Part shown: one piece after another, positions 1 through 42,584 of the stretch
How the letters are laid out: every line of letters starts with the position of its first letter
How positions within the stretch are numbered: the first letter of the stretch is position 1
Assembly (NCBI GenBank): GCA_965637545.1
Contig: OZ281497.1
Coordinates: 22,382,001 to 22,446,000, forward strand
Source of the DNA: Phallusia mammillata
Lineage: Eukaryota
Length of the DNA: 64,000 bases
Direction of reading: 5' to 3'
Notes under the pieces: generated by a model
The model's input: the letters and a program-made list of their open reading frames with translations, nothing else
What the model was told of the DNA's origin: nothing
Database searches by the model: none
Translations under genes and position numbers: made by a program

Positions 1-1924
1 TACGCACTCTCTTGGTTGGTTTTGTTCTTTGTCTGGATCTTGATTGGTATTGAGGTCCATAATATCCATACATCTTTTTTCCACATAATCGACCACTGCC
101 AACAAAAAAACAACAACATCTTAGCGTTAATTTGCTAACGAAACTTGACAGATTCCCACACGTGCTACCAAGTTACTAACCCGTTTTAGCTGTCCAGCGG
201 TTGTTTGAATCCAAATGCCAACATGATTTCATGATTTGATGCAAAATGCCAAATATACATTTCTGCTCTTTTGTTGACAATTGTTGTTTGACTACATCAA
301 GTTCTTTTTGAGGTCTTTTCCGTTTAGTTTTAAAACAAACAAAATTTCCTGGGGAACGTCATTATCTGCGAATGGGGTTATCTGTGATGATCTCATAAAC
401 AACAATGACAAAGCTGTGTTTGAAATAAACAGGTATTAATTTTTATACATTACATGTAAGAACCTCATAACTTACCTGTACATATCACCAAGTACAGTGA
501 TGTTTTCCGTTTCTGGAGCTGCATACAATATCGTGCATTGACTGTTGGAAGGAACTTCAGATGTGCTTGTACTAAGACCAGTTGCATGAATAATATTGGC
601 AGTACCAAAATCAGCTAGTTTTACTACTAACTCTCGGGTAACAATTATGTTGTCTGGTTTGACATCTCCATGACGAATTCCATGTCCTGGTTGGTAGCTG
701 TGCAAATACTTCAAAGCCAAAGCGAGCTGGTAAACCACCCTCATGCGATTATCCCAAGACATTTCATCGTCGCGCAAGCATTGTTTTAGAGTCTTTCCAT
801 CTACGTATTCCATTATAATGGCCACATTGGTTCCCCATGTTGTCCAGGCAAACACTTCAACTATGTTTTTATGTTTGACACGAACCATCGAGTTTATCTC
901 GGTCAGAAAGCTACAAAAACAATACGTTATAAACAGGTGTACATGAAGCATTAAAAAATTGAGATCCAATAGCAATACACGATTACCTGAAGATGAATAA
1001 AAATCAACTTAGTACAATAATCCCTACAGTTATAATCGGCTCAGGCTTTTTTTTGTTCAGGTTCGGACTTTAATTTTACATATAGCTATAATGGGCTTTT
1101 TCGGGCCTGACGACACTTAGTTTTATCAACTTTCAGGCCCAACCCTGGTTTAAAAATCAACGGATTAGAGCTGAGTTTCGAGATTTTACTCTCGGGCTCA
1201 GGCCCCAATTTCGAGCGCACTAAGAACTATAGCAACAAAATTATGTTTAAATACTCATTTAAATTGGACTCGAGATCGTCTCCTCCAAAACATATGCTGT
1301 AACATTTCGCAGTCACAACTTGATTGGATCCTTTGGTTAGGCGTTTGCGAATCACACCGTATTTTCCTTTTCCGATCAAATAGTCTTGGTTGCAAGTGGT
1401 CACAAAGTCACTTGCTTCAAAAAGTTTTGCTCTTTATGAAATGCCGGTTATACTCTCCTGTAGCAACACAAAAGTTATGATTTAGACCAGTGGTCCGTAA
1501 CCGTCGGGCCGAGGAGTTCGCTACCGGGCCGTATACTTTTCAGGTAAAATGCTTTAAAACATTTTGCCCTATTAAGGCATTTTCATTGCTGAACATTTGT
1601 AGTTTTTTTGAAGGCCGTCCGCGATAAAATTTGAGTTTAAAAAATCGTCCACAGTACAAAAACGGTTGCCGACCCCTGATTTAGACAATATAGTAACATT
1701 AGAAGTTATATAAAACCAACACAGGAAGTGCCGTATATTTGACACAACAGGTTGCTCCCATCTAAATAGGAGAATAGACCTTTTTTGTTGGCCGACATTT
1801 TGAACGTGACGTAAAACACTGTAGGCTATAGGTGGCTAATGTTTGCTTTTATTCCAAAAGGCCCTTACTTAAACTGAGACTTCAAACGTATTGAAATAAT
1901 AGTGTGACTTACTTCCATTTCCAT
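1..1924 (-). pseudogene. KinB0: RIPK-like non-RD Ser/Thr kinase pseudogene (exons 1913-1924, 1255-1457, 476-910, 181-413, <1-95; continues beyond window start)
   Basis: Kinase motifs GKGKYG, VTAK, HGDVKPDN, DFG, YAAPE, DMYS in GT-AG exons with the same phases as KinB1. TAA at 1434-1436 aligns with CAA of KinB1. Two frameshifts in the 181-413 exon (~382 and ~318) with TAA at 362-364. Confidence 0.85.
1488..1678. mobile_element. hAT-type MITE in KinB0 intron
   Basis: Imperfect TIRs CAGTGGTCCGTAACC / GGTTGCCGACCCCTG and a perfect 8-bp TSD ATTTAGAC (1480-1487, 1679-1686). Confidence 0.9.
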
Positions 1925-2827: not shown

Positions 2828-4375
2828 TCAAACTAAGATCCGCTTGTAAGGGCGGAAAAACTTATCCAATCCTACGCGATTAGAAGCCTGACTGGGTTCA
2901 GGAACCTCAAATGTGGCTGCCTCATTGATTTCCATTTTGTCATCTGATTCTTGCAAAATGATGCGTTGAACTTCTTCCTTAACTGTGAAAGAGAATACAA
3001 TATTTCATATTAACTTAAATTTCTCACTAAAAAAAATCTTGAAGTAAAAGCTCACATATATATGGTGTTTGAAACGATACGTCTACTGTGATTGAATAAC
3101 AAATACCAGATTATTGGGAAACATACACCCTTAATAATCTTTGGACGATTGCTTGAATTTTGCGACCAACAGGATACAACCAATGGTTTCATCAGATCAT
3201 CATCATTAATATGAGACACATCTGGTCGTCGTCCATCTTTGATAGCGCGAATTATTGCCAAATTGTCCATTCCAAGAAAGTCATCACTTGCTAACCTTTC
3301 CGTTACAATTTCATATGCTACGACGGCAAAACTACAAAAGATTTAAAGAAGCATACAGATTTTGTAACATATTAATTATTGATTTCGATAAGGCAGGTTC
3401 TTTAAACTGTTATGTTTTGTTGGTAGTGGCAAAAACTGTTTGGTTTGAAAAACTATTTGCAGTTTAGTATCAGCTCACCTGTATACATCCCTTGCCTGGT
3501 CATCATATCCTTCCCCATTCAGAATTTCAGGCGCAGAGTACAGAAGAGTGTGAACTGTAGATATATCCAGCGTCAAGCTTGACGACTGGCATCCAGACGC
3601 TGCTCTAACATTGGCGGCACCAAAGTCAGCAAGCTTCAAGACAAATTGTGGTGTGATTAAAATATTACTTGCTTTTATATCACCGTGAGTAAATTTCTTT
3701 TGGGAATCGAATGTGTGCAAGTAGCTAATAGCTTCTGATAGTTGATGTATCAACTTCAAGCTAATACTTTTTGAAAATTGAATTTGTTTGTCTTCGATCA
3801 AATTTGTCAAAGTTTTTCCACCGACGTACTCAAGAATAAGTCCAACGTTGCTGTTCCGTGTAGTAACAGCCCATACCTCCACGATGTTGTTGTGGTTTAT
3901 CCTTGCTAATACATGTGCTTCGGTCTTAAACCTTTAACAATACGAAACAGAAACATAAACAGTCCGGAATAAAATAAACCGTTGTTGTGTTTTACATTTT
4001 AGTACATTTATGTTGGATTTTTGACATAATTTTGGTAAGTATAAAATCTGCAATAAAGTTTTACTTACGAATTCCGGCAGAAAATCATATCTTCGGGGGT
4101 GCCAGTCAGTTCAGTACACTTAACAGCAACTTCTCCCAACCTGTCGTGATAACAGCGACGCACAGCACCAAAACTTCCAGACCCAATGTAATCAACTTCG
4201 TTAAAACTGGTTTTTAAATCGTTTGCCACCAAGTCCGGCAATTCATGAGGCAACTCGCTCATCTGTAAATCAACAAAATTTATCTGTTTGCATTATATTG
4301 GATTTTAAATAGGCTAGAGTAAATTATTCTCACCAAGCACTTTTCCATTTCCACTTGGGTTTGCGCTGACGCCAT
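2828..4375 (-). CDS. KinA1: intact RIPK/IRAK-like non-RD kinase, 348 aa (exons 4334-4375, 4069-4262, 3479-3931, 3129-3331, 2828-2982)
   Basis: MASAQTQVEMEKCL|MSELPHEL...; GSGSFG, VAVK, alphaC E (FKTE), HGDIKASN, DFG, YSAPE, DVYS, CW...NRP. All introns GT-AG, phases 0/2/2/1, total 1047 nt in frame. Confidence 0.88.
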
Positions 4376-4961
4376 TTTCACTGTCGCATTTTTGTGACGC
4401 TTGGTCTGGCCTTTGTCTACTGCGTAACCTGAAGCCGAAGTGTTTTTGCAACTATTGAAGTGCGATACAGTACATTGGAAATAAAAACTTCGTTACAAGT
4501 AACTGTATTTTTGCCGAGTCTTGTATGTTTAAAAATTGAAATTGCGTTTGTATCAATATTATTGTATCACTGGGCATAATTGTAAAATGAGGATTTAAAT
4601 TCTTGTGTGTTTAAAACCCTACAGGTGTGGAACTTGTGTTTCGAGGGCTACGCTTTAGTGGTCACGTATGTAACGTTGACTTGTTACCTGTAGAACTGGC
4701 AAATCTTAAATTAAACTGTTTCATATTGCAGTGTGAATATTTCTGTACCTACGGTACGTGAACGACTTGGTAATGAGTTATATAAATCTATATTTTTAAA
4801 TGTTTAATTAAATCTAAGATACAAAAGTTTGATTTTTGCAGGCCTTATTTGTACAAAGATTGTTGTTTTTCTTTTGAATGTTTTTTAACTTCAGTTTCAA
4901 CTCTGCTCGAATTGAATGATCAAAGTTTGTTGGACTGTAACGCCAAATTGATGTAAAAGCT
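4376..4961. promoter_or_regulatory. Putative shared bidirectional promoter/5'UTR between divergent KinA1 and KinB1
   Basis: 586 bp between opposite-strand start codons. Homologous blocks (e.g. TCTTGTGTGTTTAAAACCCTACAGGTG) are retained at 14288-14900. Confidence 0.55.
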
Positions 4962-6994
4962 ATGCAAACTGGTGTAAGTTTACAAACTTCGCCTATTTTT
5001 TATTTTTTTGTGTGAAATGTGTGTATGGCAACCGAAATGAATTAAACAAATAAGAAAAGATACTTAATATGTTACCTATGCAAGCTTTTAACTGTTGACA
5101 TAACTGTGCTTATAAATAAGATGTTGTATAGTAAAGATGTTTGCCGGTTAGGATTCGACACCAAAAACGATAGTACTAATTAATTCAACGCTTTTCCAAC
5201 CGGAGTAGGCTATACATTGTTTCATAAATATATTTAGCGTGGACCGCAAATTGCTTGAGAAAATCGTGTGGGGATCGTTATGACACAACATACAAAATTT
5301 TGAGAACAACTGTACCAAAAAAAATCTTGCTAATCTCGAGTACAGATTCTCGAACGTTTTTCAATGGGACCCAAGTATTTTAAAATCTAATTTTATGAAT
5401 GTTTTCGGCTCATAGATATACAGTTCTATTTCTAACAGAAATAGGCGTGCCAAAACAATTTTCAGGTTACCCAGGTTAGGGTCGCGATTAATACTTTGAG
5501 AAACACTGGTCCAGAGGACTGTATCTACTATGTGTTGCATGTTGTAATTGAATGGCTGTTCATGTTGTAAAATTGATTTAGGCTGATTTGCCGGGAGTCT
5601 CGCAAAGAGTACCCAAGATTTCAGCTGATGAGTTAGTTACCAGTCGGAATTCAAATGATTTTCTCGGTAAAGGTGGTTATGCTTGTGTGCGAAGGTGTAA
5701 GTACAACAACGATGTTGTAGCTGCAAAGTGCTACAGCCTAACATTTAGCGGCGATGAATTACAATCCAAAACTAATGGGTAAGGTGCCATTCTCTACATG
5801 TAAATGACCTGTTTGTCGTAATCAACGAATGTGTTCCGTAATTCAGGTTTCTGACAGAAGTAAACGCCTTGGCCCGAATAAACCACAAACATATTGTGAA
5901 AGTACATGGATATGCCATTTGGAAAACGTACAACGTGGCAATTGTCATGGAGTATGTGCAGGGAAGAAGTCTAAAATCCTATTTGCACCATAACCCGAAT
6001 ATGGAAATACCTTGGCCGTTTCGGTTAAAGATTGCTTTCCAACTTTCTTTAGCTTTGCAGTATTTGCACAATTATGAACCAGGACATGCGCTTCGTCATG
6101 GAGATGTGAAACCAGAGAACATAATCATCACCAAAAAATGTGTGCTAAAATTGACCGATTTTGGGGCGGCACAGATCATTCGAGCCACTGGTCTTGACGC
6201 AAGCACATCCGAAGTTCCCACCACTGGCCAGTCAACATTATTGTATGCTCCCCCGGAAGTTGAAAACCTAAATGTACTAGGCGACATGTACAGGTATGGT
6301 AACGCTGCTGTGTGCAACTTGTTTAATTTATCATAAAATTGTGTTACATCTTGACGTTGCAGTTTTGCCATCGTGGTTTTTGAGATCATTACAAGAACCA
6401 CGCCATTTTCGGAGTATAGTTTTTCTATTTTGTTGCATTTAAAACAAAGCGGAAAAAAGCCCCTGAAAGGACTTGATATAGTCAGTTTAGTGTTAGAATC
6501 ACAACCTATCTACAACAGTCTGAAACATATCATGGAAAAATGCTGGGATAATAATCCAGAAAACCGTTGGAGTGCTTCGAAAGGTAACTAACTCGAAGAC
6601 TAAAACAATCAACTGTCAAAATCATAATTGTGGTTGTGGTTTCAGTTGTTGATTATTTGGAAACAAGTTTCAAAAACAATCCTGAGAGCGGAGCCAACGG
6701 TGACCTTTTTGAGATTAATGATGAAATAAACAACCAAAACGTTGAAATGTCGCAGTTCAACGCTCCGTTCCTAGAATGTGCCACACCCCCAATTGAAGCA
6801 GGTAATCGAAGAACCCCTGAATTAAATATTTTATAGGGTGCTTTGTAAACTAAGTGATTCGTCTAAATTGTTGCAAAAGATGTAAAAAATGCATTTCTGT
6901 AGTGGCTATAACAGATTTTTTTCCATTTTTAACAGTTACCCACACCGTGAATAACATTACCTTCTACGCCAATACGGTTAACATCAATACCTGA
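4962..6994 (+). CDS. KinB1: intact RIPK-like non-RD kinase, 363 aa, with N/T/I/V-rich C-terminal tail (exons 4962-4973, 5582-5778, 5847-6293, 6363-6583, 6646-6801, 6936-6994)
   Basis: MQTG|ADLPGVSQ...; GKGGYA, VAAK, FLTE, HGDVKPEN, DFG, YAPPE, DMYS, KCW...ENRW. GT-AG introns, total 1092 nt in frame. The 12-nt first exon is supported by the analogous MEME|gtaagt exon of KinB0. Confidence 0.82.
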
Positions 6995-7102
6995 TGGTAA
7001 GTATATGAAAGCATTCAAAGTCTTTTCCTTTTTTAGTTGGTAAAAAGTAATTTGTAAAATCTCTTTAAAAATTAAAAAAAATAACTTGATCTCTTACAAA
7101 AG

Positions 7103-7283
7103 GCACGGGGTTAATGATCGACTTCTCGATGAATACAAAAGCTTGTATGTCGCAAAGGCACCAATATTAGACATCCGAAAATACAATTTGTTATTCTCTC
7201 GATCAAGTAAATCGATGGGTATAGCATGGAAAATGTCAAGCAGGTCGCAACGTCACCGACGCAGTAGAATAAATTGGATTTGA
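7103..7283 (+). other. Exon downstream of KinB1 stop, open in the KinB1 frame (3'UTR exon or relic coding exon)
   Basis: Donor TG|gtaagt at 6997 lies 2 nt after TGA, and acceptor tacaaaag lies at 7101-7102. The phase matches and the frame stays open to TGA at 7281-7283. Confidence 0.5.
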
Positions 7284-7827
7284 ACAGTATCACAGGTGCA
7301 ACCGACACACACGAAATATATAGGAATCATCAACGCATTTTTACTGTTGGTAGTGTCATACACTGTAATTTACCCCTCTTAGTGGTGCATACATTTACCC
7401 GCATATATTTGAAACAGCGAAAACTCCGTTATTAAACTATTTTCGCGAATCGGTGATGACAAGGTTTGCGTTTGTTAAAACAGCTTTTGTCTTTCTGTTT
7501 CCATTTCTTGTCTCATCGTATTTCCGTTTTGTTATCATACGACGTTACCATTTCGATTTCTTCTCGTGCTATTATAGTATACAGCTAGTGATTTTTGATA
7601 CTTGACGACCTATCGTCTACAATAAGTTTGAACCTTCTCTATAAGTTTATAACAGATTTATAATCGTAATAGTGCCTTGTACTTAATACGTATGCCATGT
7701 ATTTAAAAATATAGTTGTGCCCTTCTAAACGATTCACAGAGTTTTCATAGGTTGCTTTTATATTGCATTTTTATGTATTTTAAGGAACCAGCATTTTATA
7801 TATTGTGCTAGTGTAGTTGCTTTGTAC

Positions 7828-8231
7828 TGGTGATGCACCGAACCCGCCTCAACGGTTCGGGACGAAATCGAATACTCGACCACAAGGCCAAATAACTTCG
7901 GCTGAATAAGGCCGAAATAAGGCCGAAAAATCCCTTTTTGATCGATGTTTTTAACTGAACCTTGTGTAGCTGATGCAAGTGAACTGGTTTTAAGGCACTC
8001 CAAAATATTTTCACAATGCGTAACCTTTACCAAAGTTTTAATATTTAGCAGATAACTCGGCTCGTAATTTTTAGATGCAGCAATTACTTAATGTATGATG
8101 TTTCATTATGGTGATATTGTAAGTTGAGGCACTAATTTCATACAATTACATTTTCAGGCCGATAAAAGTTCTGGCCGAAACCGAAACAAAGAAAATGGCA
8201 TACTCGGCCGATAAACTTCGGTGTATCACCA
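7828..8231. mobile_element. hAT-type MITE
   Basis: TIRs TGGTGATGCACCGAA / TTCGGTGTATCACCA, 8-bp TSD CTTTGTAC/GTTTGTAC (7/8), internal GGCCGAAA repeats. Confidence 0.8.
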
Positions 8232-9891
8232 GTTTGTACAAATTTAATCTCAAGGAAATGCTACAGAAATCGAAGCAGTCGCAAAACGGTTTTGAGGTCA
8301 TGTCTATTTGCTGTTGTGTAGGTCCTCCTACTAGGTACTTAGACTGTGTATACGCGAAAACATCGGGGCCAAGAAAAAATTGAATATCACCAAATTGATA
8401 GGCCCAATTAAAGTATCAACTTACTTCGTTGAACAAAAACTAACAGTGAAAGTAGATTTGAACTGGACACAGGTTTATCTATACTGTGGTGTATGTACAT
8501 CATCGTTTAAATTTCCGCCTGTTCTGGTTACCATGACTTTTTGTTTTATCCAACTCGATTCTACAGCCTTCAAACTACAACAAAGTTTTGTCTTTGTATG
8601 TTGGTGCTCGGGAAGCTAAAACACACTGTCTTGTGTCTTTTAAAAATTGTAATTATAGTGATATTTGTTAAATAAATCCACCCTAGTCTCGAATCACTTC
8701 ATGATATCAAATGGAATTATGAATTGCCTGCGGGTTTGTCGCAAGGGTTTACTGGTATAATACTTAAAATAATATAGTTATTTTGATGTCGTATACGACG
8801 TTAGTCATAAGTTCATTGACGTTTTGTAGGCTGTAACGCATAATGAGTTTTTTCCACTCTCATAAACAAAAAATGGCTTACCACGTTTTGACGTAACGTG
8901 TACAAGCTAACCAAAAGATTCGAGACCGAAGTACATCACTTATAACTATCGTTCACAGGCTTGACACAAACATATAACTGCTTAGATGAGAACTTGTTAC
9001 GTGGCATAGTAAATTACCTCATCAAAAAGCACTAAAACCCAGCCGAAAAGCATTATTTTACGTCATAAATTCGGATATTGTCAAAAAATTTACCCATGTA
9101 ACAGTTAAAATGGTAGGCCTAAGTTAAAATCAGCACACATCTTATTTTCACTTTGGTTCGGATAATAAATTTAGCAATTATGTTTAAAGGAATATTTTTT
9201 TTTCGAGTTTCATGTTGCCAAATTTCCTACGGCTAAGCATAGTATGTGAGTATGATAAGTAGTTTGTCCTATTATTTTGGTGACTGATTACACACTGTAG
9301 GTGTTAGTTACTGTATCGTGTTACGTTGTGGATGGCTCAAAACAGAGTCAGGTAAACTTTGGATTTGAGATGGTCACACCGAACAGGGAATATAAAACAA
9401 TTGTAAAAGAATATAAAGTAGCAAGAACGTTAGCGACCTCCTAAGTTAGCGACCTCCGTTTTTAACTACAATGCGAACGCTCCGTATACCACGAGGACCA
9501 GGCTCAGAACTGCCTCAAATTTGACACAAAAATGGCAGTCCCAAAGTCACGTAATCTTGATGGCCAATTGCAATGTGCAAGCGCGACACGTCGACGTCCA
9601 AATCATTGGTGCGAGACAGCATTTGATTAGGCACGCAAATGTAGCGGTACATAAAAACGTGTCATTACAAAAAGTAAAATGCAAATACAAACAAATATAA
9701 AGGTAAATATAGACAAAAGTGTGAGTAATAACAACGGTAAATCTTAAGTGAAAACAAGTCACATATAAGCAAAGATTGCGGAAAATCAATAGAAAAACAC
9801 CCGTGAAAATAAAGCAAGAGACTTTTAAAAACATTAACTACTACAAGTGCATAAAAAGACATAAGAACAAACCATAGTGTGTGGTGTTCAT

Positions 9892-10057
9892 TAAAGTCCA
9901 AAGTTGCTGTTCCATTTAGTAACAGCGCGTACCTCCACAATTTTGTCATGGTTTAGCCTTGCTCATACATGTGCTTCGGCCTTGAATCTTTAACATTACG
10001 AAACAGAAACATAGATAGTCCGGAGTAAAATAGAGCATTGTGTTTTACACTTTAGTA
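9892..10057 (-). pseudogene. KinA fragment (start of exon 3 plus preceding intron)
   Basis: FKAEAHV*ARLNHDKIVEVRAVTKWNSNFGL* with TGA at 9963-9965. Intron matches 3932-4005. Homology ends at a MITE terminus (CAGGGGTCTCCAAC at 10058). Confidence 0.85.
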
Positions 10058-10125
10058 CAGGGGTCTCCAACACGTGGCCTCGGGCCACATGTGGCCCGCC
10101 AGGCAATTTTCTGTGGCCCGCGGCG
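10058..10125 (+). mobile_element. hAT-type MITE left end (partial)
   Basis: CAGGGGTCTCCAACACGTGGCC... with GGCCCGC repeats. No matching right end found. Confidence 0.55.
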
Positions 10126-10689
10126 TAATCAGCAAATGAAAAAATAAATAAGTATCTTGTAAAATTTAAAGGATGTGTTTGTTTTACTCACTCTTCAAGT
10201 ATTTCACAATTCAAAATCATATATCAAGTCAAAAATACCATATTTAACCTTTGCGATCACTGATCTCTATAAACCCTGAATTGCGCTACTGGCCGTCACG
10301 GTTGAAGCACATTGAAGCGTAATGGCGGCTGAAAAGTAAGCCCCAAAAATGCATTGCAGGCAATGGAAAAATGACGATAATTTTTATTTTAGGCATCTGT
10401 ATAACGATTTTTGCAGATATGATTGGTAGATTAATAGGACGCATGTATTCCAGTGTGTAATAACCTATAAATATGCGTAGATTGACTGTGATGTGTATTA
10501 GTGTAGGTGTACTGGATATACGTTATTAAGTTAGTGTTGAAATAAATCATTACTAAGTGAAATGTTTTATTGTGCAATATAAGTGGTTTTCGTGCTTTTT
10601 TAAGTATTTTAGACATGAATGCAACAAGATGGCTACTTCCTTCACAAAAGATGATGTAATTCTTTGTGTGACATTACATTGTGCTAATC

Positions 10690-12350
10690 CGAACTGCTGT
10701 TTTTGACTGTTATCAAACTTCAGGAAATTCTGACTAACGTGTGGAATAACGTTTTAGGCCTAATTAAAATCACAAAAAAAAAAATTCCTATTATGTCTAT
10801 TTGAGCATCTTACCGATATCAGTTTTGAAAGAAATGATGAAAAAGTTTAACTGTCGAGGTTTAACGCCCCGTTCCAAGATTGTCCCAAACCAAAAACCAA
10901 AGAATTAGGTAACCAAAATTTTCAAAATAAAGCACACTTGAAACGCCTAAATATTTGCTTCAAGTTTACAATCTTTGATGCTTTTAAATATTTTAATTAT
11001 TAGCACTAACAGCAGTATCTCTCTATTTGGCAATTATAAAAGTTGTTTTAAAAAATATATATTTTTAGTAACGCCAGTAGAAAAAAATATGTTTTAAAAC
11101 GTTTTCAGCGGTGTTTTTTGAAAGTAATTCGACTATAACAAACTTTTCTTTGTTTAATAGTGCCCCATCGGAATAATTTTATTGACATGAGTCATAATTC
11201 ACTAGCTCCCATACGTCGTATACCACGATTTTATGGTAAGTACATCTAAACATTACAGTTTTAATTTGGGTAAAGAACAGTGTGTAAAATAGTTAAAAAA
11301 ATAAATTTCAAAAAATAATTGCATTCCCCTGAATAAGGTATGGAATCCCTTAAGTTCCCAGGGAGTATAAGGGGTCTTCCGTCGCAAAAGCGCCGTTATA
11401 CAAAACCACTGGCGACCGGATTTGAAACCAGGAAGTACGATATATCATACTTGTGGTGAAGGAAATCGGTTGAGAGGTTTTATAGATGGTAATCAAGGCA
11501 CTTCCTTCACTGCTCAAATAGACAAAATCAATACATATGGTATGGTAGTCCCTACAGAGATAATCGAAATGCCCCTGGCTCTTTAAAGCATTTTTCCGAT
11601 TGGCTATATGTAACTGGTATCAATTCTTCGAAATTCTCTCACATGTAATGATACCAGGTTGTCTTTGCACTTCAAAATATCCGCAACTTTTGTCACAGAA
11701 ATAGGTTTGTTCCAATCATTGCCTTGGTAGGTGTAAACGTTAATAGGTGAAATGACGCATGAATATTCCTTCAAATGTGTGCGTATGTCTTTTCACTCTT
11801 TACCAAATGTAGTAAATGCCGTGGCAAACTAATTTGGCCCTAAAAACGTTAGATATGTAACCCAAATAAGGGAATCAAACAAGCACGAACTTTAAAGCCT
11901 GATGAAAAGCAAAATGAACTAAAATTAAAACACAGCGAATCCTGTTATTTCACCGTGTTAATAACCAGGTATGCCAACATTGGCATTTGTATATAGTTTT
12001 TTCCCTTTCGTTTCAACACTTTCTCATTGTTTCGTATCGTTACTGTTTGACGTCCCTACTGGCAAACTGTACCGTTTTCTGCACTTGCTATTGTGATGAT
12101 GACGACTGCTGTGGTTTGTTATATATGTATATGTGTGCAAACTTTTAGCAGCTTTTCAGTAGTAATCGTATGTACTTGATCTTTGCGTACTGAATTTAAA
12201 GACTTAGTTGAATTCAAAGATCGCCCTTTTTGCCATTCACAGAGTCAGTTTGTGAATAGAATGTTTTTACCGCAATAGCACGCTTGAATAAACGACTGAG
12301 ATTGTTTTTGCTTTGTGCCTGTTGACCATTTGACATTTTACCTCTGTTGC
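10690..12350 (-). pseudogene. Degenerate gene-like block of unassigned family (paralog of ~26820-28480; partial inverted copy ~21530-22518)
   Basis: Segments bounded by splice-like signals shared between paralogs (e.g. ...FW[F/S]GTILER[G/S]VKP..FKT[D/S][I/V]|gtaag). Coding-like stretch seen as ORF 22108-22491. Many stops and frameshifts. Confidence 0.35.
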
Positions 12351-12782
12351 ATCACAACGGGATTCAAATGTCACAATGCATTTTGGTTTGTCGCTTAAGA
12401 AGAACTTTTTCAAACAGGTTTTATGCTATATTAAAACGCCAAAATTTTTAAAACCACTCGTTCGTTTCAAATCGCAATTTATCAATTCCTTGTGCGCGAA
12501 TTAAGACAGTGTCGCGGATCCCCGGTTAAAAACCATTGCTGTACTCGTCAGGTTTACTGGCTTACGCGAGTATATACAGTTGGAATACCACAGCATGTAT
12601 ATCACGTTTGAATTAAACTATATTAGGCGGTGGCACCACAAATATTGTCAATGAACGCTCGGTGTCAATACATGAAGATGCCTATTTCATCACAAATAGT
12701 CATACAAAGCAATTTTTGGTAAAACGATTTACTGTTGTTTGTCTACGCTTTTAAAGCAGAACCAACAATATATACATGAAAA

Positions 12783-14287
12783 TCAACTTTTAATTATTTC
12801 GAAAGGGCGAAAAAACTGATCCAATCCTACACGATTCGAGGCATGACTGGGTTCAGGAATCTCAAACGTGGCTGCCTCATTGGTTTCCGTTTCGTCAGCA
12901 AATTCATCGTTAATGATGCGTCGAACTTCTTCTTCCACTGTAAAAGACAGAACACATTAATGATGACTACAAGAAAATAAAACGTGTACACTTGGAGTTT
13001 GAATGGAAATCTTAAGCCTAACTATAATTTAATGACAAACACTAGATTCTTTGGGAAATACCGTTTTTAATCTTGGGACGATTGCTCGGACTCTGCGACC
13101 AGCAGGATACAACTATTGATTTCATCGGATCGTTTGCATCAAAACGCCCCGCATCTGGTCGTTGTTCATCTTTAATCGCACTGATTAATGCCAAACTGTT
13201 CATTCCAAGAAAATCATCACTTGCTAACCTTTCCGTTACAATTTCATATGTCACCACGGCAAAACTGCAATATATTAAAAACGGCTGTTCATTTTTTGTA
13301 ATCATTTGCTCGCTTTGAAAATACAGCTTTTTAAAACAGTTTCATGTGTTTGTAAGCACACTAAAAAACTGCTGTGTGTTTTGTAAAAATATAGCTCACC
13401 TGTACACATCCCTTGCGTGGTCATTATATCCGTCCCCATTTAGAATTTCAGGCGCAGAGTACAGAAGAGTGTGAACTGTGGATATATCCAGCGTCAAGCT
13501 TGACGACTGGCATCCAGTTGCTGCTCTAACATTGGCGGCACCAAAGTCAGCAAGCTTCAAGACAAATTGTGGTGTGATTAAAATATTACTTGCTTTAATA
13601 TCACCGTGAGTAAATTTCTTTTGGGAGTCGAAGGTGTGCAAGTAGCTAATAGCTGCAGACAGTTGGTGTATCAACTTCAAGCCAGTGCTTCTTGAAAATT
13701 GAATTTGTTTGTCTTTCATCAAATTTGCCAAGGTTTTTCCACCGACGTACTCAAGAATAAGTCCAACGTTGCTGTTCCATGTAGTAACAGCACATACCTC
13801 CACGATGTTTGGGTGGTTTATCCTTGCTAATACATGTGCTTCGGTCTTAAACCTTTGCGGAAACATAAACTGTCCGGAAATAGAATAAACCGTAGTTGTG
13901 TTTTACATTTTAGTGCAATGTTTTCATGTTGGATTTTTGATATAATTTTGGTGAGTATAGAATCTACAATAAAGTGTTCACTTACGACTTCCAGCTACAA
14001 ATCATATCTTCGGGGGTGCCAGTCAGTTCAGTACACTTAACAGCAACTTCTCCCAACCTGTCGTGATAACAGCGACGCACAGCACCAAAACTTCCAGACC
14101 CAATGTAATCCACTTCGCTAAAACTGGTTTTTAAATCGTTAGCTGGCAACTCCGACAATTCATGAGGCAACTCTCTCATCTGTAAAGCAACAAAACTTAT
14201 CTGTTTGCACTATATTGGATTTTAGATAGAGTAAATTATTCTCACCAAGCACTTTTTCATTTCCACTTGGGTTTGCGCTGACGCCAT
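12783..14287 (-). CDS. KinA2: intact RIPK/IRAK-like non-RD kinase, 348 aa (exons 14246-14287, 13986-14179, 13400-13852, 13062-13264, 12783-12937)
   Basis: Same exon sizes and motifs as KinA1, GT-AG introns, no stops. Confidence 0.88.
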
Positions 14288-14900
14288 TTTCACTGTCGCA
14301 ATTTCGTGACGCTTTGTCTGGCCTTTTGTCTGCAAAGTAACGTGAAACCGATGTGAGATTGTAACTATTGCGTAAGTTTGATACAGTGCACTAGAAATAT
14401 AAACTTTGTTACAGGTAACTCTATTTCTGCCGAGTCTTTCATATTTACAAGATAAAATTGTCTTTGTATAAATTTTATTCTATTACACAACATGACTGGA
14501 AAATAAGGTTTGTAACTTGGCTTTTAACTCTTGTGTGTTTAAAACCCTACAGGTGCGGAACTTAGTTTTAGTTTCTAGGGTTACGAATTAGTGGCCGCTG
14601 TGTGTAGGCTATCGTTGATTTATTACCTGCCGACAAGAAAACTTCATTTAAATTGATAAATGGGGTAATAATTGCGTATAATTATGTAGCTACAGTTGTG
14701 TATTGTTTTGACTTAACAATTTGCATTTATTTTTCAAATGTTTAATTTAGCCCAGCCGCTTCAAAAGATTGAAGAAATATTTGTACAAAGTTGTTGTTTT
14801 CCATTTGACTATTTTTCAAGCGTCAACTGTGCACCAAGCGAAAGATAAAAGATTTGATAAAAGATTGCTGAATCGGAAACGATAAATTAATGTGCAAGTA
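14288..14900. promoter_or_regulatory. Second copy of putative bidirectional promoter (KinA2/KinB2)
   Basis: Homologous to 4376-4961 and lies between divergent genes. Confidence 0.5.
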
Positions 14901-16355
14901 ATACAAAGTGATGTAAGTTTACGCAAAATTTTTAGACGTGCAGTCACTTTTTTCCGCTTTTTAAATTAAAGAAAACCGTACATTGTAAGTAAAAAATTCT
15001 TAATTTCGTTGTGTGTACATGCACATAACTGTATAATATTATTGGAAATACTTGTGTTCAAAAAATTATTGTACTTCACTTCATTTCGATTAAAATTTGA
15101 CATAAAAACAATGAAAATAAAGAAGCTTTGTCTCAATCTAAAGCTATTTCAGGGTAATTTTTTGAATACTTATGTTTTGGGGTGGTTTTAGGCTGATTTA
15201 CCGGAAGTCTCGCAAAGAGTACCTAAGATTTCAGCCGATGCATTGTTTACCAGTCGGAATGCAGATGACTTTTTAGGTAAAGGAGGTTATGCTTCTGTGC
15301 GAAGGTGCAAGTACAACAACGATGTTGTGGCTGCAAAGTGCTACAGCCTGACCTTTAGCGGCGATGAGTTACAATCTAAAACTAGTGGGTAAGCTGACAT
15401 TAAAGTCTTGTTTGCATGACCTGTTTTTCCTAATTTGGCGACCTATATGTGTTTTGTAATTCAGGTTTCTGACAGAAGTAAACTCCTTGGCCCGAATCAA
15501 CTACAAACATATTGTAAAAGTTCTTGGATACGCGATTTGGAAAATGTGCAACGTGGCAATCATCGTGGAGTACGTGCAGGGGGAAAATCTAAAATCCTAT
15601 TTGCACCAAAATCCCAAACAGGAAATACCTTGGCCGATTCGGTTGAAAATTGCTTACAAACTTTCCTTAGCTTTAAAGTATTTGCACAACTATGAGCCAG
15701 GACATGCCCTTCGACATGGAGATGTCAAACCAGAAAACATAATCATCACTTCAGAATGTGTTCTTAAATTAACCGACTTTGGGGCGGCACAGATCATTCG
15801 ATCTACTGGTCTTGACACAAGCACATCCGAAGTTCCAGCGACTAGGCAGTCATTATTACGTTATGCACCTCCCGAAGTTGAAAACTTAAATGTGCTTGGC
15901 GACATGTACAGGTATTGGAACTCGTATTTGTGTAATGTTGCTGTGTGAAATATTTTGTTATAGTTTTGTTGTAATCTTAACGTTGCAGCCTTGCAATGGT
16001 TGTTTACGAGGTCATTACCAGGATCACACCATTTTCGGAGTACGATGTTGCCGATCCAGTCTTGTTTACTTTAAAACAATGTGGAAAAAAACCAACCATG
16101 GAACTTGATAATGTCGGATCCACTTTGATGTCAGAATTGAAAACTATCTACGACGGTCTGAGGCACATCATGGAAAAATTCTCTCCTATCGGTGATCTAA
16201 TGGTGTGCCATGTTGCCTTTGCACTTCGAAATGACTCGCAACTTTTGTCACAGGTTTGTTCCAATCATTTGCCTAGATGTAAACGAACAGGTGAAATGAC
16301 ACATAAATATACTTTAAAATACAGTAAACGCCCCAGAAAATTATTTTGGCCTTGA
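14901..16355 (+). pseudogene. KinB2: start-lost, 3'-truncated chimeric KinB copy (exons 14901-14912, 15192-15388, 15465-15911, 15989-16355)
   Basis: The ATG position reads ATA. Kinase homology stops after ...HIMEK (16178), losing the CW..R of subdomain XI, and the frame runs 58 codons into an unrelated block also found at 27692. Confidence 0.8.
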
Positions 16356-16998
16356 AAACGTTAGATTTGTACCCACTGCGCAAATCCAGCTGCATTCTGC
16401 GTATTGGCTCGTAAACAGTGCTTTATATTAATCAATCTATAGAGAATTAGCAAAGAACTAAAAATTGCAATATATTACAAAGCATATTGAGTAGTGTGCA
16501 GGTATAAAAATGTCCCTGGTTGCTGTGTTCAAGCACAAACTTAAAAAGCTTGATGAAAATCGAAATGACCTGAGAGCAAAAAAAAAAAAAAAACAGCGAA
16601 ACCCTTTTATTCCATCGTTTTAATAACCACTTATTATTTTAATAACCACTGCTTTTGTATAGTTTTTTTTTGCCCTCTCGTTTCCACACTTTTTATCACC
16701 ATTGTTCCATATCGTTACTCTTTGACGTGTCATATGTGTATATGTGTGCAAGTTTTTGTCAGCTTTTTGGTAGTATTCTTATGTAGCCTACTTGATCTTT
16801 GCGTCATGAATTCAAAGCCTTAGTTTCGCTCATTTAACCATTCACAGAGTCAGTTTGTTAATAGCTTGTTTTTACCGCTATAGCACGCTTAAATAAACAA
16901 CTGAGAATTAAAAAAGCATTTTGATTTTTGCCTGTTAAATCCATTCCGCAGCAAACAAAACCGTATTTGAGAGAAAAACTATTCTGAGTAATCTATAG

Positions 16999-17105: not shown

Positions 17106-18369
17106 CGGATTAAAAACTACTTCGGCCGACCCTAACGAAAACAGAAAAAACGATCTGTGACAAAAAAGACGTGCCAGTCGCTTAGACCGCCATCTTGAAA
17201 AAAATTTAATACTTCAGGTGTAACTTTTACAGCAAACTACAACATAGACCTACCATACGCTTCACTGATCATGAGACAAAGGGTGGTCGCGTGTGTTTTG
17301 CGTATCAAATGTGGTTATAAATAAGTTAGTATGATCGTTCGACTAACTTGTTTATCCTTGTGCCAAGGCGAGGCCAGCCTAATGATTTTATTTAGCTGGA
17401 AGTGGACATATATTTACGTATCTGATCAATAATTTTAATTTAAAGGCTTTGCACCCGATGTTTTTAAGTTCACATAAAACAGAAATGACATGGAAACCAC
17501 TTTACTACTATACATTGTTAATCACATTTGAAAAAACTAACATTTCTGTGAAATCTTTATGCATGACGTCTATAACTATATGCAAGAGAATGCCTTTATG
17601 TCACGAAACGCAATACCTTACTTAAAACATTCCCTAAATCACCCAAATTAACTATCACCGGCAATATACAGGAAGCTTGCTTATTGTCAATACGTACAGG
17701 GTGCGAAAGTTAATACTGTAGAATAAACTTCATACTCATCTGTACAATAACTGGAACAGTGATTTTGCATTCCTGAGAGAACACAATTCTCGACGTTATA
17801 TACTGACGTTTGCATATTGAATTACACGACCTATAGATTACTTAGAATAGTTTTTCTCACAAATACGGTTTTGTTTGCTGCGGAATGGATTTAACAGGCA
17901 AAAATCAAAATGCTTTTTTAATTCTCAGTTGTTTATTTAAGCGTGCTATAGCGGTAAAAACAAGCTATTAACAAACTGACTCTGTTAATAGTTAAATGAG
18001 CGAAACTAAGTCTTTGAATTCATGACGCAAAGATCAAGTAGGCTACATAAGAATACTACCAAAAAGCTGATAAAAACTTGCACATATATACACATATGAC
18101 AGGCCACATCTGTCATCATCATTACAATAGCAACTGAAGAAAACGGCTCAGATTGCCAGTAGGGACGTCAAAGAGTAACGATATGGAACAATGGTGAGAA
18201 AAAGTGTGGAAACGAGAGAGCAAAAAAAACTATACAAAAGCAGTGGTTATTAAAATAATAAGTGGTTATTAAAACGATGGAATAAAAGGGTTTCGCTGTT
18301 TGTTTGTTTTTTGCTCTCAGGTCATTTCGATTTTCATCAAGCTTTTTAAGTTTGTGCTTGAACACAGCA

Positions 18370-18569
18370 NNNNNNNNNNNNNNNNNNNNNNNNNNNNNNN
18401 NNNNNNNNNNNNNNNNNNNNNNNNNNNNNNNNNNNNNNNNNNNNNNNNNNNNNNNNNNNNNNNNNNNNNNNNNNNNNNNNNNNNNNNNNNNNNNNNNNNN
18501 NNNNNNNNNNNNNNNNNNNNNNNNNNNNNNNNNNNNNNNNNNNNNNNNNNNNNNNNNNNNNNNNNNNNN
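18370..18569. other. Assembly gap (200 N)
   Basis: Run of exactly 200 N. Palindrome symmetry predicts ~804 bp (15717-16520). Confidence 0.98.
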
Positions 18570-19385
18570 TGTCGAAGGGCATGTCCTGGCTCATAGTTGT
18601 GCAAATACTTTAAAGCTAAGGAAAGTTGGTAAGCAATTTTCAACCGAATCGGCCAAGGTATTTCCTGTTTGGGATTTTGGTGCAAATAGGATTTTAGATT
18701 TTCCCCCTGCACGTACTCCACGATGATTGCCACGTTGCACATTTTCCAAATCGCGTATCCAAGAACTTTTACAATATGTTTGTAGTTGATTCGGGCCAAG
18801 GAGTTTACTTCTGTCAGAAACCTGAATTACAAAACACATATAGGTCGCCAAATTAGGAAAAACAGGTCATGCAAACAAGACTTTAATGTCAGCTTACCCA
18901 CTAGTTTTAGATTGTAACTCATCGCCGCTAAAGGTCAGGCTGTAGCACTTTGCAGCCACAACATCGTTGTTGTACTTGCACCTTCGCACAGAAGCATAAC
19001 CTCCTTTACCTAAAAAGTCATCTGCATTCCGACTGGTAAACAATGCATCGGCTGAAATCTTAGGTACTCTTTGCGAGACTTCCGGTAAATCAGCCTAAAA
19101 CCACCCCAAAACATAAGTATTCAAAAAATTACCCTGAAATAGCTTTAGATTTAGACAAAGCTTCTTTATTTTCATTGTTTTTATGTCAAATTTTAATCGA
19201 AATGAAGTGAAGTACAATAATTTTTTGAACACAAGTGTTTCCAATAATATTATACAGTTATGTGCATGTACACGCAACGAAATTAAGAATTTTTTACTTA
19301 CAATGTACGGTTTTCTTTAATTTAAAAAGCGGAAAAAAGTGACTACACGTCTAAAAATTTTGCGTAAACTTACATCACTTTGAAT
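18570..19385 (-). pseudogene. KinB2' inverted copy (5' exons 19374-19385, 18898-19094, 18821 into gap)
   Basis: Reverse complement of 14901-15716. The start-codon position reads ATT. Confidence 0.8.
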
Positions 19386-19998
19386 TACTTGCACATTAAT
19401 TTATCGTTTCCGATTCAGCAATCTTTTATCAAATCTTTTATCTTTCGCTTGGTGCACAGTTGACGCTTGAAAAATAGTCAAATGGAAAACAACAACTTTG
19501 TACAAATATTTCTTCAATCTTTTGAAGCGGCTTGGCTAAATTAAACATTTGAAAAATAAATGCAAATTGTTAAGTCAAAACAATACACAACTGTAGCTAC
19601 ATAATTATACGCAATTATTACCCCATTTATCAATTTAAATGAAGTTTTCTTGTCGGCAGGTAATAAATCAACGATAGCCTACACACAGCGGCCACTAATT
19701 CGTAACCCTAGAAACTAAAACTAAGTTCCGCACCTGTAGGGTTTTAAACACACAAGAGTTAAAAGCCAAGTTACAAACCTTATTTTCCAGTCATGTTGTG
19801 TAATAGAATAAAATTTATACAAAGACAATTTTATCTTGTAAATATGAAAGACTCGGCAGAAATAGAGTTACCTGTAACAAAGTTTATATTTCTAGTGCAC
19901 TGTATCAAACTTACGCAATAGTTACAATCTCACATCGGTTTCACGTTACTTTGCAGACAAAAGGCCAGACAAAGCGTCACGAAACTGCGACAGTGAAA

Positions 19999-21099
19999 AT
20001 GGCGTCAGCGCAAACCCAAGTGGAAATGGAAAGGCGCCGAAGCACATGTATTAACAAGGATAAACCACCCAAACATCGTGGAGGTATGTGCTGTTACTAC
20101 ATGGAACAGCAACGTTGGACTTATTCTTGAGTACGTCGGTGGAAAAACCTTGGCAAATTTGATCAAAGACAAACAAATTCAATTTTCAAGAAGCACTGGC
20201 TTGAAGTTGATACACCAACTGTCTGCAGCTATTAGCTACTTGCACACCTTCGACTCCCAAAAGAAATTTACTCACGGTGATATTAAAGCAAGTAATATTT
20301 TAATCACACCACAATTTGTCTTGAAGCTTGCTGACTTTGGTGCCGCCAATGTTAGAGCAGCAACTGGATGCCAGTCGTCAAGCTTGACGCTGGATATATC
20401 CACAGTTCACACTCTTCTCTACTCTGCGCCTGAAATTCTAAATGGGGACGGATATAATGACCACGCAAGGGATGTGTACAGGTGAGCTATATTTTTACAA
20501 AACACACAGCAGTTTTTTAGTGTGCTTACAAACACATGAAACTGTTTTAAAAAGCTGTATTTTCAAAGCGAGCAAATGATTACAAAAAATGAACAGTCGT
20601 TTTTAATATATTGCAGTTTTGCCGTGGTGACATATGAAATTGTAACGGAAAGGTTAGCAAGTGATGATTTTCTTGGAATGAACAGTTTGGCATTAATCAG
20701 TGCGATTAAAGATGAACAACGACCAGATGCGGGGCGTTTTGATGCAAACGATCCGATGAAATCAATAGTTGTATCCTGCTGGTCGCAGAATCCGAGCAAT
20801 CGTCCCAAGATTAAAAACGGTATTTCCCACAGAATCTAGTGTTTGTCATTAAATTATAGTTAGGCTTAAGATTTCCATTCAAACTCCAAGTGTACACGCT
20901 TTCATTTTCTTGTAGTCATCATAAATGTGTTCTGTCTTTTACAGCGGAAGAAGAAGTTCGGCGCATCATTAACGATGAATTTGGTGACGAAACGGAAACC
21001 AATGAGGCAGCCACGTTTGAGATTCCTGAACCCAGTCATGCCTCGAATCGTGTAGGATTGGATCAGTTTTTTCGCCCTTTCGAAATGATTAAAAGTTGA
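19999..21099 (+). pseudogene. KinA3: KinA2 copy with ~0.4 kb deletion removing exon 2 (Gly-loop, VAVK)
   Basis: Junction GGAAATGGAAAG-GCG-CCGAAGCAC at ~20033-20037 joins exon 1 to exon 3 out of frame (TGA 20128-20130). Downstream exons 20617-20819 and 20945-21099 are intact. Confidence 0.88.
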
Positions 21100-22518
21100 T
21101 TTTCATGTATATATTGTTGGTTCTGCTTTAAAAGCGTAGACAAACAACAGTAAATCGTTTTACTAAAAAATGCTTTGTATGACTATTTTTGATGAAATAA
21201 CCATCTTTATGCATTGACACCGAGCGTTCATTGACAATATTTGTGGTGCCACCGCCTAATATAGTTTAATTCAAACGTGATATACATGCTGTGGTATTCC
21301 AACTGTATATACTCGCGTAAGGCAGTAAACCTTACGAGTAGAGCAATGGTTTTTAACCGTGGATCCGCGACACTGTCTTAATTCGCGCACAAGGAATTGA
21401 TAAATTGCGATTTGAAACGAACGAGTGGTTTTAAAAATTTTGGCGTTTTAATATAGCATAAAACCTGTTTGAAAAAGTTCTTCTTAAGCGACAAACCAAA
21501 ATGTATTGTGACATTTGAATCCCGTTGTGATGCAACAGAGGTAAAATGTCAACTGGTCAACAGGCACAAAGCAAAAACAATTTCAGTCGTTTATTCAAGC
21601 GTGCTATAGCGGTAAAAACATTCTATTCACAAACTGACTCTGTGAATGGCAAAAAGGGCGATCTTTGAATTCAACTAAGTCTTTGAATTCAGTACGCAAA
21701 GATCAAGTACATACGATTACTACTGAAAAGCTGCTAAAAGTTTGCACACATATACACATATAACAAACCACAGCAGTCGTCATCATCACAATAGCAAGTG
21801 CAGAAAACGGTACAGTTTGCCAGTAGGGACGTCAAACAGTAACGATACGAAACAATGAGAAAGTGTTGAAACGAAAGGGCAAAAACTATATACAAATGCC
21901 AATGTTGGCATACCTGGTTATTAACACGGTGAAATAACAGGATTCGCTGTGTTTTAATTTTAGTTCATTTTGCTTTTCATCAGGCTTTAAAGTTCGTGCT
22001 TGTTTGATTCCCTTATTTGGGTTACATATCTAACGTTTTTAGGGCCAAATTAGTTTGCCACGGCATTTACTACATTTGGTAAAGAGTGAAAAGACATACG
22101 CACACATTTGAAGGAATATTCATGCGTCATTTCACCTATTAACGTTTACACCTACCAAGGCAATGATTGGAACAAACCTATTTCTGTGACAAAAGTTGCG
22201 GATATTTTGAAGTGCAAAGACAACCTGGTATCATTACATGTGAGAGAATTTGCTTTGAAGAGCCAAGGCCATTTCGGTTATCTCTATAGGGACTACCATA
22301 CCATATGTATTGATTTTGTCTATTTGAGCAGTGAAGAAAGTGCCTTGATTACCATCTATAAAACCTCTCAACCGATTTCCTTCATCACAAGTATGATATA
22401 TCGTACTTCCTGGTTTCAAATCCGGTCGCCAGTGGTTTTGTATAACGGCGCTTTTGCGACGGAAGACCACCTGTACTCCCTGGGAACTTAAGGGATTCCA
22501 TACTTTGTTTAGGGGAAT

Positions 22519-23402
22519 ACAGAAGTAAACTCCTTGGCCCGAATCAACTACAAACATTTTGTAAAAGTTCTTGGATACGCGATTTGGAAAATGTGCAACG
22601 TGGCAATCATCGTGGAGTACGTGCAGGGGGAAAATCTAAAATCCTATTTGCACCAAAATCCCAAACAGGAAATACCTTGGCCGATTCGGTTGAAAATTGC
22701 TTACCAACTTTCCTTAGCTTTAAAGTATTTGCACAACTATGAGCCAGGACATACCCTTCGACATGGAGATGTCAAACCAGAAAACATAATCATCACTTCA
22801 GAATGTGTCCTTAAATTAACCGACTTTGGGGCGGCACAGATCATTCGATCTACTGGTCTTGACACAAGCACATCCGAAGTTCCAGCGACTAGGCAGTCAT
22901 CATTACGTTATGCACCTCCCGAAGTTGAAAACTTAAATGTGCTTGGCGACATGTACAGGTATTGGAACTCGTATTTGTGTAATGTTGCTGTGTGAAATAT
23001 TTTGTTATAGTTTTGTTGTAATCTTAACGTTGCAGCCTTGCAATGGTTGTTTACGAGGTCATTACCAGGATCACACCATTTTCGGAGTACGATGTTGCCG
23101 ATCCAGTCTTGTTTACTTTAAAACAATGTGGAAAAAAACCAACCATGGAACTTGATAATGTCGGATCCACTTTGATGTCAGAATTGAAAACTATCTACGA
23201 CGGTCTGAGGCACATCATGGAAAAATTCTCTCCTATCGGTGATCTAATGGTGTGCCATGTTGCCTTTGCACTTCGAAATGACTCGCAACTTTTGTCACAG
23301 GTTTGTTCCAATCATTTGCCTAGATGTAAACGAACAGGTGAAATGACACATAAATATACTTTAAAATACAGTAAACGCCCCAGAAAATTATTTTGGCCTT
23401 GA
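22519..23402 (+). pseudogene. KinB3: 5'- and 3'-truncated KinB fragment (direct copy of 15472-16355)
   Basis: Begins abruptly at ACAGAAGTAAAC inside exon 3 and has the same chimeric 3' junction at 23225/23226. Confidence 0.88.
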
Positions 23403-41734: not shown

Positions 41735-42584
41735 AGTAAATACTATTTCTACTCTACAGCTAGTAAGTGTTTTTTATTTATTTTAGTGTAAAAAATGAAA
41801 CCACAGGAAGTAAATGCTACTGTTTAAAAAAACATATGATGAGTCAAAAAATCAATACTGAATAGTATTTTATTTACAAAATGATGAGCAGATGATAAAA
41901 AGACAAATGTCCTGACAAAACAACCTCTATTCTGCAACTCAGGTACTATTTTCTCCCATTTTTAAAATTTTAGAAATGTTTTTTTAAACCATGTAAATAT
42001 TACTTGCATTCATTTTCTTGACATTTTAATGTCCACAAGACAAATAAGTCTCCAATTCATTGTGTGTTACTAAGACAAAAGAGTTTAGCATTGCCTAAAA
42101 TCCTGATTGATGTACTGTGTGAGTAATTCAAATTAGAGGAACCTTTATGTCTTGCGCTTATTTTCTGCAGACATGTTAGATTCATGAAGAAGAATATCAT
42201 ATTTTGCAACCATTCAGGCTATGGCACTAATTTTTAATCAGAGAAACAATTATGTCAGGTGCAAGTGTGTCATTCCATCATGAATAATAGCATAAATTAT
42301 TGCCCACAGGTTTGATTGATGACAAAGAATATCATATTTTACAACCGTTTAGGCTGGTGAATGGTTTTTCTTTAACCTACATAAACAAAGCCATTGGTAG
42401 ATGCCTGTGTAAAGTCTAAGATTTCAGCATTTAAGTCATGCAGGACAAACCTAACCAATTCTATTCCCTCTACACCCTACTTTCCGACTTTCTTTGAAAA
42501 AATAACGAAATATGACAAGTTGAGAATTAAAAAGTGTACGTATTTGATGTTAAGTAAACACCATAGAGAAAGCACTTTTGATAA

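Follow-up and report, generated by a model that had tools for sequence, protein, structure and literature searches.

KinA1 and KinB1, head-to-head RIPK-like kinase genes in a probable tandem and inverted array of the ascidian Phallusia mammillata

Do two kinase genes of different type that lie head to head, in an arrangement that recurs nearby, form a functional pair, or are they neighbours that were copied together? This question is raised by a 64,000-nucleotide stretch of the Phallusia mammillata genome (assembly GCA_965637545.1, contig OZ281497.1, positions 22,382,001 to 22,446,000 of the forward strand), referred to below as the window, in which the genes KinA1 and KinB1 occupy positions 2828-6994, counted from the first letter of the window. 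A sequence-only reading had described them as two distinct non-RD RIPK-like kinases, duplicated as one cassette, and had proposed that they act as a co-regulated, obligate pair in an immune or cell-death module. We consider it likely that the locus is instead one unit of a fast-turnover, birth-and-death array, both tandem and inverted, of ascidian-specific, kinase-only, non-RD RIPK-like (TKL) genes. Nothing points to mutual dependence of KinA1 and KinB1.

Gene structure, catalytic motifs and tails

The window is eukaryotic DNA with a GC content of 36% and spliced genes, and gene models were built by hand from three-frame translations and GT-AG splice sites. KinA1 (2828..4375, reverse strand) is an intact A-type kinase gene of 348 aa, whose five exons follow canonical splice sites (4375-4334, 4262-4069, 3931-3479, 3331-3129 and 2982-2828, the last including the stop codon). 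Its first exon, exon 0, has 42 nt of coding sequence, encodes MASAQTQVEMEKCL and ends at the donor GTGAGA. KinB1 (4962..6994, forward strand) is a B-type kinase gene of five to six exons and about 355 aa with a complete kinase domain (exons 4962-4973, 5582-5778, 5847-6293, 6363-6583 and 6646-6801). Its 3' end can be completed in two ways, either by reading on from 6801 to a stop at 6836 or by splicing to an optional exon at 6936-6994. The exon at 5582-5778 contains no ATG, and both an in-frame TAG and an acceptor site lie ahead of it, so the gene requires its four-codon exon 0 (4962-4973, encoding MQTG, donor GTAAGT).

The short first exons find support in paralogs. Transcript data of the species were available as contigs only (Logan contigs, from which rare transcripts are dropped), and the runs are called RNA-like here, their RNA labels being guesses. 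These runs gave one A-type paralog contig, of 488 nt, from run X7. It matches KinA1 exon 1 at about 87%, parts from the genomic sequence at precisely the acceptor that precedes the ATG of exon 1 (4262) and continues into a homologue of exon 0 (...QPEVMERYL, followed by M). The contig is a spliced transcript of an A-type paralog and supports the junction between KinA exons 0 and 1. The closest database proteins are two P. mammillata paralogs named "RIPK1-like", CAB3265604.1 (P0008, 350 aa) and CAB3265597.1 (P0004, 550 aa). P0008 begins with MSVKMVSVQPGVMERCL followed by MSQLPHDL, which supports the short first exon of KinA1, and P0004 begins with MEME followed by VDVSGVSQR, which is consistent with the four-codon first exon of KinB1; the positions of the exon junctions in both proteins were deduced from those of KinA1 and KinB1.

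The start codons of KinA1 and KinB1 lie on opposite strands at 4375 and 4962 and are separated by 586 bp (4376..4961). These coordinates reproduce the spacing that the sequence-only reading had given for the two head-to-head genes. The 5' untranslated regions and a shared or divergent promoter presumably sit within this interval.

The Pfam Pkinase profiles (PF00069/PF07714) match both genes, and exon 2 alone scores 101 bits for KinA1 and 82 bits for KinB1. As read in the translations, KinA1 carries the Gly loop GSGSFG, VAVK, the alphaC Glu, HGDIKASN, DFG and APE, and KinB1 carries GKGGYA, VAAK, Glu, HGDVKPEN, DFG and PPE, which bears out the earlier remark that both genes retain the Lys, Glu, Asp and DFG residues and have HGD in place of HRD. 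The Gly loop, catalytic Lys, alphaC Glu, HGD..K..N, DFG, A/PPE and the subdomain XI Arg are all kept in KinA1, in KinB1 and in KinA2, the second A-type copy of the window. The HGD motif, with no Arg before the catalytic Asp, is found in KinA1-3, KinB1-4 and KinC, which are therefore non-RD kinases; 17 ascidian relatives have HGD as their consensus and show no variation at the His and Asp. Pseudokinases are not indicated, as the VAIK Lys, HxD Asp and DFG Asp are all present in KinA1, KinA2 and KinB1. On the strength of the intact motifs, together with ratios of nonsynonymous to synonymous divergence (dN/dS) of 0.18-0.45, these three are predicted to be, and probably are, catalytically active Ser/Thr kinases.

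Outside the catalytic domain the two types differ, the A type consisting of a kinase with a short tail and the B type of a kinase with an acidic tail. The statement that KinA has no interaction domain agrees with the Pfam search, in which no domain beyond the kinase was found in it; RHIM, death domain, CARD or any other pairing domain was absent from both KinA1 and KinB1. The RHIM tetrad (I/V-Q-I/V-G) is likewise missing from both translated tails, of which that of KinA1 ends in ...NRVGLDKFFRPYKRILV and that of KinB1 in ...PPIEA plus either GNRRTPELNIL or VTHTVNNITFYANTVNINT. The latter, encoded by the optional exon 6936-6994, holds no Q-x-G tetrad and has no counterpart in the other B-type copies of the window. 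Being kinases alone, with neither RHIM nor death domain, the two products are neither RIPK1 proper nor RHIM proteins.

The A-type tail closes with a C-terminal motif, (N/D)RVGLD(K/Q/R)F(F/L)xP(Y/F), conserved in KinA1, KinA2 and P0008 (sites 2831-2900, 12786-12850 and P0008 residues 330-350, respectively) in a last exon that otherwise diverges fast. This motif could be a docking peptide. The B-type tails have SxFxAPFxEC in common. The KinA1 tail also contains a TRAF-type PxQxS motif, which was dropped from consideration as neither KinA2 nor P0008 conserves it.

Placement among RIPK-like kinases

Tunicates are the closest living relatives of vertebrates. An exhaustive protein profile search followed by per-domain rescoring set the near family off sharply above 195 domain bits, and all named matches above this value were ascidian (Phallusia, Ciona and Clavelina). 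A word-index search with KinA1 exon 2 returned one weak match, and with P0008 (at E <= 1e-20, too strict a threshold) or P0004 (at E <= 1e-6) as the query, this type of search yielded little besides self-matches.

A family profile made of the 17 ascidian kinase domains was then scored against PDB structures. RIPK1 (160.8 bits) and RIPK2 (160.5 bits) came ahead of RIPK4 (153.4 bits), IRAK4 and CTR1 (149.4 bits each), a narrow margin of 7-11 bits, and one entry, a JAK chain, scored above RIPK1 and RIPK2. Compared singly with solved kinases, A-type sequences found TAK1, RIPK1 and RIPK2 as best matches, and B-type sequences RLK, TAK1, RIPK2 and IRAK4. The assignment to a RIPK-like, non-RD TKL class in the sequence-only reading is reasonable in view of the position of RIPK1/RIPK2 in the profile comparison and of paralogs named "RIPK1-like", although the distance to RIPK4, IRAK4 and CTR1 is small; judged from these scores, "RIPK-like TKL" seems a fair label for both kinases, by that narrow margin. 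The vertebrate RIPK1/RIPK2 kinase domains, the best solved matches bar the JAK chain, are TKL-type and, as here, have no Arg before the catalytic Asp (the catalytic loop reads HKD in RIPK1 and HHD in RIPK2). However, their accessory modules (RHIM, death domain, CARD) are missing from KinA and KinB.

KinA and KinB are 35-40% identical. They share the same intron phases (2, 2, 1) and can therefore be regarded as old paralogs. In a maximum-likelihood tree they fall into two separate clades with long stems, (P0008,(KinA1,KinA2)) and (P0004,(KinB1,KinB2)), each with 100% support, which confirms that they are distinct kinase types. No Ciona or Clavelina orthologue fell into the A or B clade among the representatives included in the tree. 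P0008 and KinA1 share 66% identity across 330 aa as well as the short first exon and the RVGLDxF..P motif; P0004 and KinB1 share 53% identity across the kinase domain and acidic tail. Both proteins are paralogs encoded by different genes. At its C-terminus P0004 extends for about 200 aa (residues 350-550) beyond what is present in KinB1, and Pfam has no match to this extension. Nothing related to it turned up among the 150 matches listed or in the window, and the DNA downstream of KinB1 (7000-12800) was searched for C-terminal exons like those of P0004 with no result.

Two observations on gene structure in relatives may be added. The Ciona and Clavelina relatives (L007 and L006) have kinase blocks corresponding to exons 1 and 2, with breaks at roughly the residues where KinA and KinB have theirs, and the relatives found in ENA assemblies are intronless genes.

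True RIPK1, i.e. kinase, RHIM and death domain in one protein, has been reported absent from tunicates in a 2025 survey (PMC12119088). What ascidians have in its place is a large and rapidly evolving complement of RIPK-like non-RD kinases whose C-terminal parts vary: some consist of the kinase alone, and others carry a fused Kelch, Macro or Ras/Roc domain. It is this expansion that makes the locus interesting for the evolution of innate immune signalling, and we found no paper in the literature describing an ascidian RIPK-like kinase expansion.

Duplication, gene conversion and decay

Recurrences of the locus within the window were mapped by self-BLAST and exon mapping. Segments 2848-4661 and 5577-6416 of copy 1, which holds KinA1 and KinB1, match segments 12803-14594 and 15187-16042 of copy 2 at about 82%. 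Copy 3 (18570-22251) is inverted, matches copy 2 at 98.6-99.4% and adjoins a gap of 200 N (18370-18569). It forms the right arm of a palindrome, whose arms (11323-16998 and 22518-17831) are identical at the same level; the gap sits inside this right arm, and a partial direct copy, KinB4, follows the arm at 22519.

The copies differ widely in their state. KinA2 (12783..14287, reverse strand) is an intact A-type gene of 348 aa with an open frame and canonical splice sites (exons 14287-14246, 14179-13986, 13852-13400, 13264-13062 and 12937-12783). Its neighbour KinB2 (14901..16355, forward strand) is a disabled B-type gene, in which the ATG of exon 0 (14901-14912) has become ATA; the exons at 15192-15388 and 15465-15911 are open, and exon 3, which begins at 15989, breaks off behind IMEK at 16177. 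Because of this cut KinB2 has no subdomain XI. In copy 3, KinB3 (18570..19094, reverse strand) can be read through exon 1 and 83 codons into exon 2, with the remainder inside the assembly gap, and KinA3 (19999..21099, forward strand) is a pseudogene. A 409-bp deletion in KinA3 removed exon 1, with the Gly loop and catalytic Lys, and joins exon 0 (ATG at 19999) out of frame to exon 2 (from 20037); exons 2'-4 (20037-20481, 20617-20819 and 20945-21099) are otherwise open. KinB4 (22519..23402, forward strand) is truncated at its 5' end, starts inside exon 2, is 99% identical to KinB2 and has the same truncated exon 3, and, like KinB2, lacks subdomain XI. KinC (188..1463, reverse strand), a B-like kinase pseudogene in tandem behind KinA1, contains an in-frame TAA (1436-1434) and a double stop with frameshifts in exon 3 (at about 364). 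The claim that the A/B pair was duplicated as a cassette together with its intergenic DNA thus stands as far as the sequence copies are concerned, as confirmed by self-BLAST, whereas an intact A/B pair is present in copy 1 alone.

Smaller remnants are scattered between the copies. They include an orphan relic of KinA exon 2 (9894-10002, reverse strand; 109 nt, 86% identical) and B-type exon-4 relics (…LSRFNAPFQDCP…) on the forward strand at 10800-10900 and 26841-27020, one of which holds a stop.

Divergence between copies 1 and 2 is uneven. A tract at 3500..4450, spanning KinA exons 0-2 and introns 0-1, is 89-97% identical; identity outside it falls to 70-85% in KinA exons 3-4 and their introns and in KinB, with a synonymous divergence (dS) of 0.44-0.45. 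Between KinA1 and KinA2 dS is 0.12 inside the tract (about 3500-4450) and 0.44 in exons 3-4, and dN/dS is about 0.43 in both parts. Because dS and the introns shift together while dN/dS stays at about 0.43, the pattern is that of a gene-conversion tract superimposed on an older duplication. Selection on the KinA C-lobe (alphaG-alphaH) was considered as a cause and ruled out, as synonymous sites and introns diverge too. The C-lobe exons themselves (3129-3331 against 13062-13264, and 2828-2982 against 12783-12937) diverge together with their flanking introns, whose identity is 70-73% against 90-94%.

The overall dN/dS between KinA1 and KinA2 is 0.45, and exons 1-2 of KinB1 and KinB2 give a dS of 0.45 and a dN/dS of 0.18. 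By this measure, the A and B types are both under purifying selection. The intergenic DNA of copies 1 and 2, beyond position 4450, is 75-80% identical. As this is the level of the introns (70-79%), the interval gives no hint of a shared regulatory element under special constraint.

A further repeated segment of about 0.8-2 kb occurs three to four times in the window at 96-98% identity (16177-16998, 23224-24104, 27690-28569 and, inverted, 17831-18369). It begins exactly at the exon-3 cut of KinB2 and KinB4 (at 23224 in the latter), lies behind a different sequence at 27690, and no transposon open reading frame was seen within it. It marks duplication or rearrangement breakpoints of the array. 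An in-frame fusion of the KinB2 tail to a C-terminal piece of P0004 was rejected, because the similarity covers 12 aa (E = 1.8) and the break is the repeat junction that is found at 27690 with a different left-hand context.

The sequence thus shows the following history. A block with both genes was duplicated at a depth of about dS 0.45, about 1 kb of KinA was later homogenised by gene conversion (dS 0.12), and copy 2 appears to have been copied again, very recently and in inverted orientation. Individual members decayed independently thereafter. In such an array KinA1 and KinB1 may share a divergent promoter through mere proximity. The gene models, short first exons included, and the map of intact copies are what expression or biochemical tests of the locus would need.

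Functional pair, silent relics or assembly artefact

In its fullest form, the idea of a functional pair holds that KinA and KinB are mutually dependent, one as a priming and one as an effector kinase (cf. IRAK4 to IRAK1 and RIPK1 to RIPK3), expressed from one bidirectional promoter in an immune or cell-death module. Their head-to-head position with 586 bp between the start codons, the purifying selection acting on each of two distinct types and the duplication of the block as one unit speak for it; still, we regard it as quite unlikely. Co-duplication is not evidence of pairing, because segmental duplication of any neighbouring genes gives the same result. In copy 2 an intact and constrained KinA2 stands next to the disabled KinB2, and in copy 3 the A gene is broken, i.e. 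the pairing is not kept among the paralogs. Nor is it seen in other species: of seven relatives' loci inspected, Ciona supplied two, Clavelina one and two ENA assemblies four, all of them relatives rather than true orthologues from close species, and none showed an A-type or B-type orthologue or an opposite-strand kinase within 10 kb; one of them has four kinase domains, all on one strand. Conserved pairing in related genomes was therefore not borne out, and with KinA2 surviving beside a disabled partner, the intergenic DNA diverging at the intron level and no partner gene at the seven loci, the co-regulated, obligate pair is not upheld either. The lack of RHIM, death domain, CARD or other pairing domains argues in the same direction, as does, weakly, the lack of an RNA-like run with the pair, given contigs only and guessed RNA labels. 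Proteins with two kinase domains (P0006, P0015 and P0019) were considered as fusions of A and B and were rejected, since their domains group in the tree with the remaining ascidian members and not in the A or B clade; those of P0006 are copies of each other from a recent duplication and do not combine A with B. Sequence evidence as a whole neither supports nor refutes an obligate pair, to which we would give a slim chance. One may also imagine a dedicated two-kinase unit specific to Phlebobranch ascidians, with a 0.6-kb divergent promoter and assembly via the short tails (RVGLDxF..P in A, SxFxAPFxEC in B) in place of a death domain or RHIM, the surrounding array being a reservoir of decaying spares. 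This seems very unlikely to us. Unless co-expression and mutual dependence are shown, the head-to-head pair is best taken as an ordinary product of segmental duplication.

Several points weigh against the birth-and-death array as we have described it. No contig of KinA1 or KinB1 was found in the RNA-like runs of the species (run searches and four runs aligned), which we take to be mostly embryonic samples. KinB1 lacks the C-terminal region of P0004 and could be a decaying truncation, and an unresolved tree backbone leaves the A/B split undated. The role in innate-immune-type signalling, probable as it may be, is assigned by analogy, from RIPK resemblance and the non-RD motif alone. Finally, copy 3 and KinB4, near-identical to copy 2 and placed beside the N gap, could be haplotype or fold-back artefacts. 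The first two of these points, together with the broken state of most neighbouring copies, might suggest that KinA1 and KinB1 are silent, recently dead members of the array, whose frames are open only for want of time. This is unlikely, as each gene keeps its five to six exons in intact frames, together with the full set of catalytic motifs and canonical splice sites, dN/dS values of 0.18-0.45 go with a dS of 0.12-0.45, and rare transcripts are lost from Logan contigs. It is possible, albeit doubtful, that copy 3 (18570-22518) and KinB4 are an uncollapsed haplotype or a fold-back chimera at the N gap and not true paralogs, as the near-identity of the palindrome arms (98.6-99.4%) and the position of the 200-N gap inside the right arm would have it. 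Copy 3, however, has its own 409-bp deletion and point differences, which fit a paralog or an allele, and copies 1 and 2, about 18% different, are unaffected. A birth-and-death array remains the explanation that we favour.

Some known two-gene systems can be compared. The IRAK4/IRAK1 relay of the Pelle family has two paralogous TKL kinases, which there act in sequence, IRAK1 is an HGD non-RD kinase like KinA and KinB, and B-type sequences have both IRAK1 and IRAK4 among their better matches. However, IRAKs assemble on MyD88 via death domains, whereas KinA and KinB have no such domain and nothing indicates that A acts on B. Paired plant NLRs (RGA4/RGA5 and RRS1/RPS4) are likewise two related immune-type genes, divergently arranged with a short shared interval. 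They belong to another protein class, and their pairing is conserved and genetically required; that of KinA and KinB, on the other hand, is not conserved at the relatives' loci examined and has not stayed intact after duplication. Two kinase domains of one family also stand side by side in plant tandem kinase resistance proteins and in the dual-kinase open reading frames of the present family (P0006 at L003), as here. Very recent duplicates, fused or in tandem on one strand, make up those cases, while KinA and KinB are two old types on opposite strands.

The L003 locus (ENA contig ERZ25067576, positions 7649-12151), which comes from a tunicate-like assembly, consists of two adjoining intronless open reading frames of 780 and 716 aa with two kinase domains each, so that four family kinase domains stand in a row on one strand. 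In the right half of the window, tandem BTB/Kelch-like gene segments (35430-41773 against 55311-61402) are 76-93% identical over about 6 kb, with a further segment at 47696-48145 on the reverse strand. Some Ciona and Clavelina kinases of the same family as KinA and KinB are fused to Kelch propellers (P0104 and P0113).

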